A DNA stretch of 63,779 nt, the filler included, from Salisapilia sapeloensis CBS 127946 (taxonomy: Eukaryota; Protista; Oomycota), in NCBI GenBank assembly GCA_023334545.1. It is 13 parts of 13 records of this genome, joined end to end, with 100 filler letters (N's around TTAATTAATTAA, not from the genome) between each part and the next. Parts side by side here need not be neighbours in the genome. Positions count along the whole stretch, not along the records: positions 15,215 to 19,974 come from JAADVB010000652.1; 12 more parts are not named here. One strand, given 5' to 3'. Within the stretch, counting starts at the first letter, position 1. Each line of letters begins with the position of its first letter. A program made the translations under genes and the position numbers. Of the stretch, positions 15,215-19,974 are shown one piece after another. Below the pieces are notes generated by a model. It searched no databases, was not told where the DNA came from, and saw only the letters and a list, made by a program, of their open reading frames with translations.

Positions 15215-17727
15215 TTACCGCTGGTGATTTGCTCTAGCTTTTGCTTTCGTAATCGGTCGAGTCGGTGCATTCGCTTCTCCATCTTCGCTTTTAAAGTCTC
15301 GTCACCCGTAGTCGACGTTGATGTTTCAATGGTAAAGAAAGAGTGCTTGCTGAGTTCCTCCTTTGTGCCTCTATATCCTTCGTTTGAAGGTACATTTGTA
15401 GCTTCGGTAGGTATCGTTTCCATGACTGTTTCTGGCTGTATGCTAGTTCGGTGTTGGGTTTGTGGACGAGTTCGAATCGGTATTTGATCAGTGCCATCAA
15501 ATGGTGTTCTGTCCGTTTCTGAGTCACCGATCGAGTTTCTAGTACCCTTTGCTCTTAAGCTTGTGGAGTCAACTTCATTGCTTTCGGATTTAGAAACTAC
15601 GCTCGCTTGATCACTCTCACCTCGACTGGAGTCAGGGATCGCAGCAATATTCACCAAAATTGGTACATCTTCGTCAGAACTGCACGATGCCGATCTTGCT
15701 GGATCTTGCTCAGCATCGCCACTGTTAACACCAGTAGCGCTTACGTTTGCTATGCTCGGTACTTCTTGCAAAGGCACATGCAAGATTGTGTTCCCTGGTA
15801 CTTCTTCGAGCTCTCCCGGCGTTTGACCTGCTTCTGTGGGGTTGGACCTAGATGCTTTCTTTGTGTCACTGGTACTCATTAGGATCTCGGTGCTATTCGC
15901 ATCATCCATCTCCGGGCATGATAGCGCAGCAGATGCCTTTTCAATCACGTTCTCTTCACTTTGTTCTGTGCCATGCAGTGCTACAGGGGATAATACCGCT
16001 CGGCAATCTCTTTGATTTGAGCTCGGCATGAACGGTCTCCGAGCCATACCTTCTCCGGCTAAAGTCCGAGCCTGGTATTCAAATTCCCACCAGACCTGTC
16101 TCCCGCGTCTGCCCTTGTAGATGTCCATCATGGATTTCTTCGGAGCTTGCACCTGTACATCTTCGCCAATAGCCTGACAACGAGGCGGCTCGGAGTCTTT
16201 TTGCGATGAAGAAAGAGTCTTGTTGTTGGGCAAAGACTGTTCAACGTCTTCTTTTTGCTTTTTATCTTCAGACGAATTGTTCACGTCCTCCGGAACCACG
16301 TCTTTACCATCTTGGTTTGATGGGAAGGCGAAAATTGACTGAGGCTTCTCTACTCTTGCTATAGGTTCGTCGGTCTCGACAGGATTCGTAGTAGTGTTAC
16401 TTTCCCCTGAGACGCTATCTGCGTCAGCAAGCTGTTCCGAGCCACAAGTAGGCTCGGCAGCTTCCTCTTGGCTGACAGCATCGTCGACTTTCTCAGGTAC
16501 TTGCTCTAATGGAGGCAGCGGTGGAAGCTGAAGACAGTTACCGTCCATGCTTACGATCATAGCTTTCGGCAGTCGGAAAGGAGACGGCAATGACATGGAT
16601 TTGGAAATAAACTCGCGCCGGGTGCGATGGGAGGGCGGAAGACTTTGAGGACTGACCTGGGCTTTACTTTGATGGTCTTCTCGGCGTTTATTTAAGGTGG
16701 CATCATCTGCTGCATTCGTGGTCGGTGACAGATTCAAAATAAATGTATCATCGGTTCTCGCCCTCTTCCCATGCGAGAGTTTCACTCCATTTCCTTTTGT
16801 AGTCGGTATATCGTTCTGCTGAGCAAATGCAAAGATGCTTGCTGCTCTGTCGTCTGAAGTGTCTTTGTATGTTGCCACTGCTTTGCGTTCTCGATTGTAA
16901 CGTGCATTTCCTTTCACCTGATCTGGTACTTGCGCAAGTTGCTGCGGAATGAGCGAGTCTTCGTTCACCGGCTCATCCTTGAATGCCTCGTCACGAATTT
17001 CATCCCATGATATCTTGAACTGATCGTCTGAAGGTATCTCTGTATCTGCTATCGGTGCCTTGGGTGTTATACTTTGTAGTGCAAACTTCCAGTCACTTTG
17101 CTCTGATGGCACCTCTGCGGTAATCTTCTTCGCTAGCTCTTCTGTGCTTTTCAGCACTTTGACTCGACTAGGAGGGATGTAAAGGATCCACTTTGTCCTA
17201 CTTGGATCGCTCGTTGGGAAAGCGACGAGTACCATGATCTCGTGCCTTCCACTTGATGCATCTCGGAGCGTGCATAGACAACACCAACGTTCATCTCCTC
17301 CACGTCGACCCTGTATTCTTTCGATAGCGAGTGACATATTTTCGCTGCTGTAGTCCTCGGACCCGATGGATTGCTGGCTCTGATTCTGCCCCGATGTGGT
17401 ATCCGTGGCATCGACGAACAACGGATTGTACTCTGCGTGATCTCTGTATTTCCGCTGAAACTCGTCTACGAATGACAGCAAATCTTTGTACGGATTGGGC
17501 CATCGGTCATAGCTGTGTGACTGAACTAGTGAATGCGCTTTGACGACGAAAGAAGCGAGCACATTTCTACTACAGATCTCAGAACTGGACAGTGACGAGT
17601 GGAGAACTTGAGATGTGAACGCCAGGCAAGACGCCGCTTTGGCTATGGTCTGTCTGTCAGTCATTGGAGCTTGAAAAGCCCTCGTAACGTATTCTCTGGC
17701 GAATGAAAATAGATATAAAACTAACAC
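15215..17727 (-). CDS. Large hypothetical protein: helical N-terminal domain plus long S/E/D/P-rich disordered region (true start uncertain, 3' truncated)
   Basis: Uninterrupted ORF of more than 830 codons running to the contig edge; no family recognised. Confidence 0.7.
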
Positions 17728-17910
17728 TGGATATTAGTGATCGATACTTTGGTTTCCGCAGACATAACGCAATATACCACAAACTTATGATAATATTAAT
17801 AATACCAATACTAATTAAACTAACGCGGTTCCTTATGCATAACGTCGTTTGGTGGATGTGTGCAAGACGATATATTCTCAACCTTTACGATGGATTGATC
17901 CAAGATCGCT

Positions 17911-19974
17911 CTAGGCAGTCAATGCCACGTCTGCTGTCGTCCAGTTAAACTCGACGAGTTGCTGCAGCTGCATGCCTTCATCTTCCGTCAGCGGCCAGCG
18001 CATGAACACCCCCGGCTTTCCCCACGGAGTGTCCACTTGAACCGTGTCGCCTGGCTGGTACATCTCGCCAGTCCACAAGTGCTTGTACATGACGTCGTCT
18101 GCAACCGCACTGCCGTTGCTGCTGATTTCGATCGGAGGGAGATACACTTCTAAAGACGTAGCTGCCATATCGTAGACTGGCGCAACGAAGAGTGCCTCGC
18201 CCATCCAGAAAGTTTCGTCGATGATACTTCGAGCTTGCTCGTCCTCTGGGGCGTACACAATCGGGTGGCGGACCATCGGCCATCCCTTCTCCTGATAGTC
18301 TCCCAACAAGGCTTTGCGGTAAGGCTTCAGAGCTCTGAACAACTGAGCATTGTAGGCGTGATACGCGACCGTCGAGTCGTTCGTGTACGCCTGAGCGTTG
18401 ACACTCGGGATGTTGCCTTCGTGCGTCCTGAACGCAGCACCAGAGAAGGCGCCCATCTCCCCCCACCGACCGAGCAGAGCAGCGCTGCGCGTGATGTTAA
18501 AGTCGGGAGCAAGCGTGTTGGTGTACCCGCCAATGTCCGAGTGTGCCTGCGCCCAGCCAGAGGACCCGGCGTGGAAGGTGCTGCTGATGACTGCACGCAT
18601 GCCATCTTCACGACTTTCATCAATGTTCTGGTCACCGACCCAGAAAAGATTCTGGTGCTTGGCGGAGAACGTGGCAGCACTACGGTGGAAGCCGACGGTC
18701 TCGTCCTGGATTTCGAGCTCCTCGGTCACTTCACGCAATATCTGAGCCCATACAGCGGGGTAGGCATTGTGGAATTGACGAGGGTTCACTTGACCCGATG
18801 ATATACGAATCGTATCGTCTACTACAAGATATTCGCCAAAATCTTGCATAGCTCCAGAGATCGGGACGCTGTAGAACTGCTCTTTAACAAGCTCTTTGAA
18901 CCAGTCAATGGTAGTCTGGTTGGAGATGTCAAGCAAGCCAGCGTCGATACCCGGACCACTCGTGATCGTCCATGCACTGCCATCGTTCGCCGTCGCGTTT
19001 TCAGCAAACCTTCCTTCTTCCAACGCCATCTTGTAAAAGTTGGTTCGATAGCCAGTGTCCTTGTTGGACACGTTGGCAAGGAACGTGTTGACATAGCTCA
19101 TCGTACGGACGCCATAGGTGCTTTGGAGGTGCGGCACCCAGTCAGCCCAAGTCGGGTACAGCGTCTCATCGTTCTCCCAGTTCCACCACAGACGCTTCAG
19201 GTCGATGCCATACAGCCCTTCTTGCAGACGTGTGCCGCACCAGTCTTGCAGCCACACGCTTACCAGTGGCATGCTCGAGTTAAGTGCGTCTTGAATGATA
19301 CCCTCCACTTTCTCCTGCCCGCCTTGGATACCAAGGACAGCTCCATCGTGGATCCAGTCCGGCAGCTCCGGCTGACGTCCGGTCACTTCCGTCAGCGCTC
19401 CAGAAGCATCCAGCATTTTGTTCCCAGCAGCCTCAACTCCGAGCGAGCCACCTACAGACGTGCCTTCGTACATGATCTCGACTGTCGAGGAAGACGAGTC
19501 TGCATAGTCGCCTTCGTGGATTTCTCCATCGAGGTATGCCTCGATCGTATCTCGGAACGGATCAGAGCTCGAGTTACTTGCCAAGTCGAAGAGAGCATAC
19601 ATCGTGCCGTCAAGTACGATCCAGCGCCCGAGCGACGAGACCATCGACGCGATGGCAGTGTATGTCGTTCGGAGCGAGCCACCAGCGTAAGCACCAGAGA
19701 TGGACGCGTTCGAGTTCAGATACGTTGTTACCGGCTCTTTGCCACGACCGACGCCACCCTCTCGGGTCCAAATAGGGATCTTCCACCCGCGCAAGTTACC
19801 AATTCCGGTCTGTTCGCCCAATCCGAAAAAGGCTTCTTCTTGCGGAGACTTGTAAGCGATGTGGACGTTGTCTACGCCATCACCATTCACGCTGGCAAAG
19901 AACTTGAGCGCACCCTCTGCATCCGAAGAGAAGTTGAGCGTCCAGGTCCAGGAAGCACAGGATTCGTCGCTAAA
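17911..19974 (-). CDS. Glycoside hydrolase family 31, YihQ/sulfoquinovosidase-like (5' truncated)
   Basis: Nucleophile motif MQDFGEYL, acid/base motif WVGDQN, plus GIQGG, WLQDW, KRLWWNW, HSDIGGYT and FRTHEGN as in YihQ-type enzymes. The frame is open to the contig edge at 19974. Confidence 0.9.
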   Translation of the reverse strand, partial: FSDESCASWTWTLNFSSDAEGALKFFASVNGDGVDNVHIAYKSPQEEAFFGLGEQTGIGNLRGWKIPIWTREGGVGRGKEPVTTYLNSNASISGAYAGGSLRTTYTAIASMVSSLGRWIVLDGTMYALFDLASNSSSDPFRDTIEAYLDGEIHEGDYADSSSSTVEIMYEGTSVGGSLGVEAAGNKMLDASGALTEVTGRQPELPDWIHDGAVLGIQGGQEKVEGIIQDALNSSMPLVSVWLQDWCGTRLQEGLYGIDLKRLWWNWENDETLYPTWADWVPHLQSTYGVRTMSYVNTFLANVSNKDTGYRTNFYKMALEEGRFAENATANDGSAWTITSGPGIDAGLLDISNQTTIDWFKELVKEQFYSVPISGAMQDFGEYLVVDDTIRISSGQVNPRQFHNAYPAVWAQILREVTEELEIQDETVGFHRSAATFSAKHQNLFWVGDQNIDESREDGMRAVISSTFHAGSSGWAQAHSDIGGYTNTLAPDFNITRSAALLGRWGEMGAFSGAAFRTHEGNIPSVNAQAYTNDSTVAYHAYNAQLFRALKPYRKALLGDYQEKGWPMVRHPIVYAPEDEQARSIIDETFWMGEALFVAPVYDMAATSLEVYLPPIEISSNGSAVADDVMYKHLWTGEMYQPGDTVQVDTPWGKPGVFMRWPLTEDEGMQLQQLVEFNWTTADVALTA

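Follow-up and report, generated by a model that had tools for sequence, protein, structure and literature searches.

Does an oomycete carry a sulfoquinovosidase, where would it have obtained the gene, and in which compartment would the enzyme act? These questions are raised by an incomplete open reading frame at positions 17911–19974 (minus strand) of a 63,779-nucleotide (nt) stretch of DNA joined from 13 parts of the genome assembly GCA_023334545.1, recorded under Salisapilia sapeloensis CBS 127946. The whole stretch is termed here the window. The reading frame lies in the piece at positions 15215–19974 (JAADVB010000652.1) and encodes a protein of glycoside hydrolase family GH31. Taken as a whole, the evidence is probably best explained by a retaining alpha-sulfoquinovosidase that takes the secretory route, belongs to a clade shared with Botryosphaeriales and is derived from an ascomycete.

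The open reading frame has 687 codons followed by a TAG stop codon (17911–17913), and its translation displays no internal stop. A start codon is missing, as the piece stops at position 19974; no intron is found in the part that is present. Phytophthora orthologues, which are about 800 amino acids (aa) long, cover the fragment co-linearly over 96%–100%, and full-length relatives extend beyond it at the N-terminal end by a median of 115 aa. The fragment therefore lacks about one seventh of the protein. An exact-pattern scan of Joint Genome Institute (JGI) metagenome contigs for a longer contig with the 5′ end of the gene gave no match. The gene and its domains are as follows, with residue numbers those of the fragment.

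17911–19974, minus strand: partial coding sequence of a GH31 sulfoquinovosidase homologue (open reading frame translation, Pfam, orthologue coverage)
18373–19317, minus strand: GH31 catalytic (beta/alpha)8 barrel, residues 220–534 (PF01055, E-value 5.9e-27)
17998–18285, minus strand: GH31 C-terminal beta-sandwich domain, residues 564–659 (PF21365, E-value 9.5e-8)
19486–19575, minus strand: insertion of about 28–30 residues, roughly 134–163, common to a group of relatives termed clade A (alignments)

Together with a weak Pfam match of the N-terminal region to the beta-sandwich domain PF13802, this gives the GH31 architecture of N-terminal beta-sandwich, (beta/alpha)8 barrel and C-terminal beta domain. 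A phmmer search of the PDB places four characterized sulfoquinovosidases on top, with E-values from 5.7e-87 to 4.6e-74: Eubacterium rectale SftG (6PNR, 5.7e-87), which has been assayed on para-nitrophenyl-sulfoquinovoside (PMC11968277), B. megaterium BmSQase (8R56, 3.2e-80), A. tumefaciens SmoI/AtSQase (5OHS, 4.6e-74) and E. coli YihQ. The next GH31 enzyme follows at 5e-15. An AlphaFold2 model built on 63 relatives has a mean predicted local distance difference test score (pLDDT) of 90 and a predicted template modelling score of 0.92, and residues 220–534 of the barrel are mostly above a pLDDT of 85. With this model as query, ranks 1–23 of a Foldseek search are all sulfoquinovosidase structures, with template modelling (TM) scores of 0.80–0.84 and, in most, a root-mean-square deviation of 2.2–3.1 Å; the E. 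coli alpha-xylosidase YicI comes after them with a TM score of 0.67. The assignment to the GH31 sulfoquinovosidases made in a first-pass annotation of the window thus stands, as the best matches in both sequence and fold are four experimentally proven sulfoquinovosidases.

That annotation was based on motifs by which bacterial enzymes recognize the sulfonate group, i.e. GIQGG, WLQDW at 26 residues further on, KRLWW and HSDIGGYT, together with both catalytic aspartates. All are present and align with their YihQ equivalents. The YihQ sequence was taken from the annotated genome of E. coli K-12 and its published numbering was confirmed on the sequence; equivalent residues were determined from pairwise alignments and an alignment of 141 sequences.

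19324–19326, minus strand: Q217 in GIQGG, equivalent to YihQ Q262, the first Gln of the Q-Q pair (alignment)
19246–19248, minus strand: Q243 in WLQDW, equivalent to YihQ Q288 (alignment)
19183–19194, minus strand: R261-L-W-W264 in KRLWW, with R261 equivalent to YihQ R301 and W264 to W304, sulfonate-binding (alignment)
18841–18843, minus strand: D378 in MQDFGEY, equivalent to YihQ D405, the catalytic nucleophile (alignment)
18631–18633, minus strand: D448 in WVGDQN, equivalent to YihQ D472, the general acid/base (alignment)
18523–18525, minus strand: Y484 in HSDIGGYT, equivalent to YihQ Y508, sulfonate recognition (alignment, with YicI as control)

Q243 follows Q217 by exactly 26 residues, as the first-pass annotation had stated, and the residues fall at the sulfonate-recognition positions of YihQ (Q262, Q288, R301, W304 and Y508). 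The seven residues, in order QQRWDDY, are found in all full-length fungal and oomycete relatives in the alignment. D378 and D448 are invariant in 63 relatives, and the sulfonate-contacting residues are invariant across about 100 eukaryotic relatives. E. coli YicI, used as a negative control, displays S, a gap, A, W, D, D and F at the same seven columns, so that four signature residues differ. The seven-residue pattern therefore discriminates within GH31 and is not a chance pattern. A literature search with the string "QQRWY" returned no paper; the motif is cited as Q/E-RWY plus an Asp-Asp dyad (PMC12780224). The K-E variant of the Q-Q pair is present in one bacterial relative in the alignment. 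The alignments confirm that the window protein is a GH31 sulfoquinovosidase homologue of the YihQ type, in which neither catalytic aspartate nor any residue of the sulfonate-recognition set is missing.

Its substrate is a separate matter. The enzyme might have a YihQ-like pocket and act on another substrate, such as a different 6-anionic alpha-glycoside, or on ordinary alpha-glucosides or alpha-xylosides. Three findings weigh against the sulfoquinovosidase assignment and lend themselves to this alternative. The match to the NCBIfam YihQ equivalog model NF007746 (PRK10426) runs end to end and scores 470 bits, which is below the cut-off of 553, a cut-off tuned to the naming of bacterial proteins; the protein is therefore filed in the GH31 sulfoquinovosidase clade and not as a YihQ equivalog. 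Between Q243 and R261 the loop exceeds that of YihQ in length, and the model has low confidence there (pLDDT about 61); an insert of about 28 residues is also present, likewise at lower model confidence (pLDDT about 79–83). Thirdly, the searchable literature yielded no assayed member of the fungal and oomycete clade, and substrate specificity thus rests on homology, at about 30% identity to assayed enzymes; a paper on a fungal "alpha-glucosidase" (PMC10268404) concerns a different GH31 subfamily. The name alpha-glucosidase is also still attached to many database entries. Yet another substrate is quite improbable when set against the complete and invariant set of sulfonate-contact residues, the lack of these residues in a true GH31 alpha-xylosidase, and structural neighbors that are exclusively sulfoquinovosidases.

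Departures from the signature are seen in prokaryotic relatives. In seven bacterial relatives of YihQ (from Hahella, Bacteroidetes, Nostocaceae, an actinomycete, Alicyclobacillus, Myxococcota and Kosmotogaceae) Gln replaces the sulfonate-binding Arg, the sequence reading SQLWWNW or KQLWWNW, with Q, Q, W, D, D and Y retained. Two Asgard archaeal relatives have Phe in place of Tyr. These proteins may have another specificity or another mode of sulfonate binding.

Relatives, introns and probable gene transfer

A word-index search with the window protein gave 403 matches, none of them identical to it. The best among the matches listed are from Phytophthora, with 66%–71% identity (BLASTP) in many species and in two paralogue groups; a partial Nothophytophthora protein displays 71% identity by BLASTP and 75% when 543 aligned columns of the tree alignments are compared. 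Next are Botryosphaeriales (Botryosphaeria, Neofusicoccum, Lasiodiplodia, Diplodia, Phyllosticta and Saccharata) at 61%–68%, followed by a few other fungi, i.e. Aulographum, Fonsecaea, Aureobasidium, the alga-parasitic chytrid Quaeritorhiza and Ustilaginomycotina. A second large fungal clade (Aspergillus, Penicillium, Mycosphaerellales) has 40%–45% identity and Mucoromycota relatives 38%–39%. The best 80 bacterial and archaeal loci, from contigs of one genome per species, are at 30%–35%. Among the best 120 of the 403 matches the only oomycetes are Phytophthora and Nothophytophthora; no targeted search of stramenopiles was made.

Maximum likelihood gave a quick tree (68 rows) and a careful tree (48 rows, model LG+C20+F+G4). 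The careful tree was restricted by leaving out seven metagenomic or Logan rows, fragments and the longest bacterial branches; no animal sequences were placed. In the careful tree bacteria and archaea form the outgroup with support of 100/100, and the quick tree gives the same picture. In both trees the Mucoromycota are basal among eukaryotes, followed by the fungi of clade B and then by clade A. The window protein, ten oomycete rows and seven Botryosphaeriales rows form a clade (100/99) that lies inside clade A and is nested in Dikarya, with Saccharata just outside of it. Forcing the fungi to be monophyletic with the oomycetes excluded costs 205 log-likelihood units and is rejected by the approximately unbiased test (p-AU 2.4e-50).

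Clade A, with the window protein, has the insertion of about 28 residues in common; clade B, Mucoromycota and bacteria do not have it. Intron positions provide a further character. The only intron of the P. cinnamomi gene (L082:10001-12491), 67 nt long and in phase 1, follows GDQVWK; at the homologous codon of the B. dothidea gene (L083:10001-12562), behind GDEVWK, there is also a phase-1 intron, of 65 nt. A second B. dothidea intron just before AMQDFG is absent in Phytophthora and in the window. The introns of both public gene models were removed by script and the translations match the stored proteins. The insert and the shared intron position are two independent characters that agree with the tree.

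The P. cinnamomi orthologue is on a 527-kb contig and orthologues are present in more than 10 Phytophthora assemblies, and these are thus not contamination; the window gene itself is known from a 4.76-kb contig. As the oomycete genes nest within fungal genes, transfer from fungus to oomycete is the most economical explanation, and because the clade sits inside the fungal radiation the oomycete gene most likely came from an ascomycete as genomic DNA. The alignments and trees indicate transfer between fungi and oomycetes and not from bacteria, and its direction would be that given by the nesting. The distribution of clade A among fungi is patchy; further transfers among fungi, or a reverse direction for the Botryosphaeriales branch, are therefore possible.

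Acquisition of the oomycete genes from bacteria, a possibility which the first-pass annotation raised for test by a subfamily tree, has in its favor that the family is best known from bacteria and that rotifer homologues have been proposed as bacterial acquisitions. It is scarcely credible here, since bacteria are the outgroup at 100/100 support and a spliceosomal intron is held in common with the fungal gene. A bacterial source was rejected on identity as well: no bacterial sequence exceeds 35% and the best 80 loci lie at 30%–35%, compared with 38%–71% for fungi, within whose genes the gene nests.

The window protein diverges ahead of the separation of the two Phytophthora paralogues, and by this one gene tree its source is likely an oomycete outside Phytophthora. 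Support for its placement with Phytophthora and Nothophytophthora is weak (89 by the Shimodaira–Hasegawa-like approximate likelihood ratio test in the quick tree, 78/60 in the careful tree). The source might instead be a fungus, or some other eukaryote that acquired a clade A gene independently, in which case the enzyme assignment would stand. Identity to Botryosphaeria (68%) is almost equal to that with Phytophthora (70%–71%), the window protein sits at an open fork in the careful tree, the adjacent gene has neither a homologue in an index of 5.8 billion proteins nor synteny with P. cinnamomi, and the contigs of the source run add up to only about 23 Mb. Such a source nevertheless is rather unlikely, given that the highest identity is to Nothophytophthora (75%), that the best tree joins the window protein to the oomycetes, that grouping it by force with Botryosphaeriales is marginally rejected (p-AU 0.044), and that the window gene, like those of Phytophthora, is without the second B. 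dothidea intron.

The oomycete horizontal gene transfer literature searched does not mention this GH31 gene; the 2011 catalogue in Proceedings of the National Academy of Sciences (PNAS) was outside the search, and a prior listing there is possible. The evolutionary account is thus unreported in the literature searched but is not unprecedented.

Probable secretory route and possible role

The first-pass annotation listed seven N-x-S/T sequons (NASI, NSSS, NVSN, NATA, NQTT, NITR and NDST) as a sign of secretion. All seven are present and four more were found, giving 11 in the fragment versus 4.4 ± 1.9 in shuffles of the same protein (p about 0.001). The density per 100 aa is 1.6 in the window protein and 1.6–1.9 in oomycetes, Botryosphaeriales and clade B; it is 0.45 in Mucoromycota and 0.15 in bacteria. 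Four sequons are conserved as follows.

19066–19074, minus strand: sequon N301-V-S, in 9/9 Phytophthora, 8/8 Botryosphaeriales, 10/10 clade B, 0/5 Mucoromycota and 0/7 bacterial sequences
18991–18999, minus strand: sequon N326-A-T, in 8/9 Phytophthora, 8/8 Botryosphaeriales and 10/10 clade B sequences
18490–18498, minus strand: sequon N493-I-T, in 9/9 Phytophthora, 8/8 Botryosphaeriales and 7/10 clade B sequences
18373–18381, minus strand: sequon N532-D-S, in 9/9 Phytophthora, 8/8 Botryosphaeriales and 10/10 clade B sequences

In all full-length Phytophthora orthologues, and in most of those from Dikarya, a few polar residues at the start lead into a hydrophobic core rich in Ala and Leu, as in a typical signal peptide. 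This N-terminus is absent in Mucoromycota and in the cytosolic bacterial relatives. Two qualifications count against a secretory assignment. The window N-terminus lies beyond the edge of the piece, so that signal-like N-termini are known from orthologues only, and these were judged by a Kyte-Doolittle hydrophobicity heuristic and by eye, not by SignalP. The sequon pattern is that expected of N-glycosylated secretory enzymes in Dikarya and oomycetes, and is silent on extracellular location. Of the earlier proposal of secretion, entry into the secretory pathway is therefore plausible, from the sequons and the orthologue N-termini; an extracellular site goes further than these features.

Six Mucoromycota members keep QQRWDDY and have no hydrophobic N-terminus and few sequons. 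The family therefore seems to have switched from the cytosol to the secretory route within the fungi.

Passage through the secretory pathway with N-glycosylation, unlike the cytosolic bacterial enzymes, would be the most likely course for the window protein, and action would then take place outside the cytoplasm, either extracellularly or in a lytic compartment. By homology the reaction would be a retaining double displacement, in which D378 attacks the anomeric carbon of the sulfoquinovoside and forms a glycosyl-enzyme intermediate, while D448 as acid/base would protonate the leaving group and activate water. Contacts to the 6-sulfonate would come from R261, the W264 indole and Y484, and the Q217-Q243 pair would lie behind these residues. 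Sulfoquinovose would be released from sulfoquinovosyl glycerol and probably from sulfoquinovosyl diacylglycerol (SQDG), the thylakoid sulfolipid; intact SQDG is a possible substrate, as it is for YihQ. The source of the lipid would be a photosynthetic host or plant debris.

Clade A genes occur in Phytophthora, in fungi that cause cankers and leaf spots, in smuts, in yeasts of the phyllosphere and in a parasite of a green alga. This range suggestively fits use of sulfolipid from photosynthetic hosts. A more specific and tentative proposal is that in plant-pathogenic oomycetes, and in the source organism of the window, an ascomycete-derived, secreted and N-glycosylated sulfoquinovosidase, transferred with its intron, strips sulfoquinovose from the thylakoid sulfolipid of the host during necrotrophy or saprotrophy, as a nutrition or virulence trait shared with Botryosphaeriales, smuts and the algal-parasitic chytrid.

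Alternatively the enzyme could be a sulfoquinovosidase that stays with the cell, passing the endoplasmic reticulum and residing in a vacuole or lysosome-like compartment, the cell wall or the plasma membrane. It would then digest engulfed or absorbed lipid or perform a housekeeping role, and would not be released onto host chloroplast membranes. From a signal peptide and N-glycosylation one learns only that a protein enters the secretory pathway, lysosomal, membrane and extracellular fates are equally discussed for animal homologues, and SQDG is inside chloroplasts, where a secreted enzyme reaches it only after lysis of the host cell. An internal location is nonetheless unlikely, as the fragment displays no C-terminal hydrophobic tail or obvious retention signal and secreted GH31 proteins are counted in oomycete secretomes, a count that is not specific to this gene.

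The first-pass annotation also called this nutritional route little examined in oomycetes. A literature search found no paper that pairs sulfoquinovosidase with Phytophthora, which agrees with that view; the automatic name "Sulfoquinovosidase" is already attached to the P. rubi orthologue, which does not, and to several fungal orthologues. The literature has mentioned eukaryotic GH31 sulfoquinovosidase homologues from 2016 onwards, and current discussion extends to algae and animals. With the enzyme class, motif and mechanism well known and orthologues automatically annotated, the present case is an extension of knowledge and not a surprise. If it holds, a major chloroplast lipid would be open to Phytophthora-like pathogens and to fungal pathogens of woody plants. 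A fungal gene acquired by oomycetes and marked by both a common intron and a common indel would be a clean further case of its kind, and the entry step of sulfolipid catabolism would have spread from eukaryote to eukaryote. Sulfoquinovosidase substrates and activity-based probes already exist.

Surroundings and apparent transcription of the gene

The piece at 15215–19974 contains two open reading frames, both on the minus strand. Features outside the GH31 coding sequence are as follows.

15217–17664, minus strand: orphan open reading frame of 816 or more codons, with its ATG at 17664–17662, cut by the left edge
17776–17910, minus strand: probable 3′ untranslated region of the GH31 transcript (ends of gene-sized contigs from runs presumed to be RNA)

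The orphan open reading frame is in tandem with and downstream of the GH31 gene and its product is rich in Ser, Glu, Asp, Thr and Pro. No Pfam domain was found in it, the protein index gave no homologue, and it does not resemble the gene that lies next to the orthologue, on its downstream side, in P. cinnamomi. It therefore gives no information on taxonomy or synteny. The GC content at third codon positions is 0.655 in the GH31 gene and 0.46 in its neighbor; expression level could account for this gap, which was therefore not taken to indicate a foreign source. The intergenic region has no strict match to oomycete initiator-like promoter motifs. This reading frame being the sole neighbor in the piece, no sulfoquinovose catabolic gene is located nearby, a point against the main explanation. 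Neighbors of the P. cinnamomi and B. dothidea genes are glycosyltransferases, a major facilitator superfamily transporter and others, with no known sulfoquinovose enzyme among them; eukaryotic genes need not cluster.

The piece corresponds to one 4760-nt contig with a depth of about 59. Its left end is joined by two contigs of 9073 and 6838 nt, each with a depth of about 30. At the right end one 1477-nt contig (depth 34.6) connects to the piece through each of its two ends, in opposite orientations. This is most simply read as a large, perfectly identical inverted duplication, i.e. two head-to-head copies of the GH31 gene and its neighbor around a unique center of about 1.4 kb that holds the 5′ ends. 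The repeat would then end inside the GH31 coding sequence, so that the copies would differ in their N-terminal part or one of them would be truncated.

A 2836-nt contig from run X2 (depth 57.8) covers positions 17776–19974 and continues for 637 nt beyond the edge. In two runs, X2 and X3, gene-sized contigs end at 17776 and 17813, and positions 17684–17775 are uncovered in run X2. The neighbor gene has a depth of 9–11 in these runs and the GH31 gene about five times that. The GH31 gene thus looks to be transcribed, with a 3′ untranslated region of about 135 nt, though contigs are no proof of this. Both runs are of the same organism as the window; a reservation is that their RNA nature is only guessed.

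A copy of the GH31 gene with 98% identity is present in a second organism (organism B; run X6, compared with window positions 17920–19971), which was sampled in five separate 2025 studies. Among the 39 changed codons listed 30 are synonymous and nine are not, and the signature residues are untouched. The excess of synonymous changes indicates purifying selection. One change, N89D, removes a sequon in the organism B copy. The neighbor gene is apparently absent from organism B (share of words about 0.2).

Comparison with known systems

The closest counterparts are predicted proteins of Phytophthora and Botryosphaeriales, for example those of P. cinnamomi, P. rubi, B. dothidea and Lasiodiplodia, which have 61%–75% identity over the whole fragment and display the same insert, sequons and signature residues. 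These are uncharacterized predictions. The window sequence is outside both Phytophthora paralogue groups and is identical to none of their members.

The GH12 xyloglucanase transferred from fungi to oomycetes (10.1101/2023.10.09.561229) shows the same pattern, where Phytophthora genes for a secreted enzyme are nested in fungal genes. Animal sulfoquinovosidase homologues with signal peptides, described in a giant clam preprint (10.64898/2026.02.11.705467), present the same idea of sulfolipid digestion by way of the secretory pathway, the lipid coming from photosynthetic partners or diet. They are of a different lineage and are biochemically untested proposals.

E. coli YihQ (5AED/5AEE/5OHT) has the same domain order and fold as the window protein, with TM scores of 0.81–0.84 at 32% identity, and shares all seven signature residues. 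YihQ, whose gene is part of a sulfoglycolysis operon, is a cytosolic enzyme with hardly any sequons and no signal sequence. The window protein differs in having a 28-aa insert, a longer loop before the Arg and no catabolic neighbor in the piece, and its orthologues, unlike YihQ, display signal-like N-termini and conserved sequons. SftG, BmSQase and SmoI/AtSQase are likewise retaining GH31 sulfoquinovosidases, but are bacterial and intracellular. AtSQase has a K-E pair at the position where the window protein and YihQ both have Q-Q.

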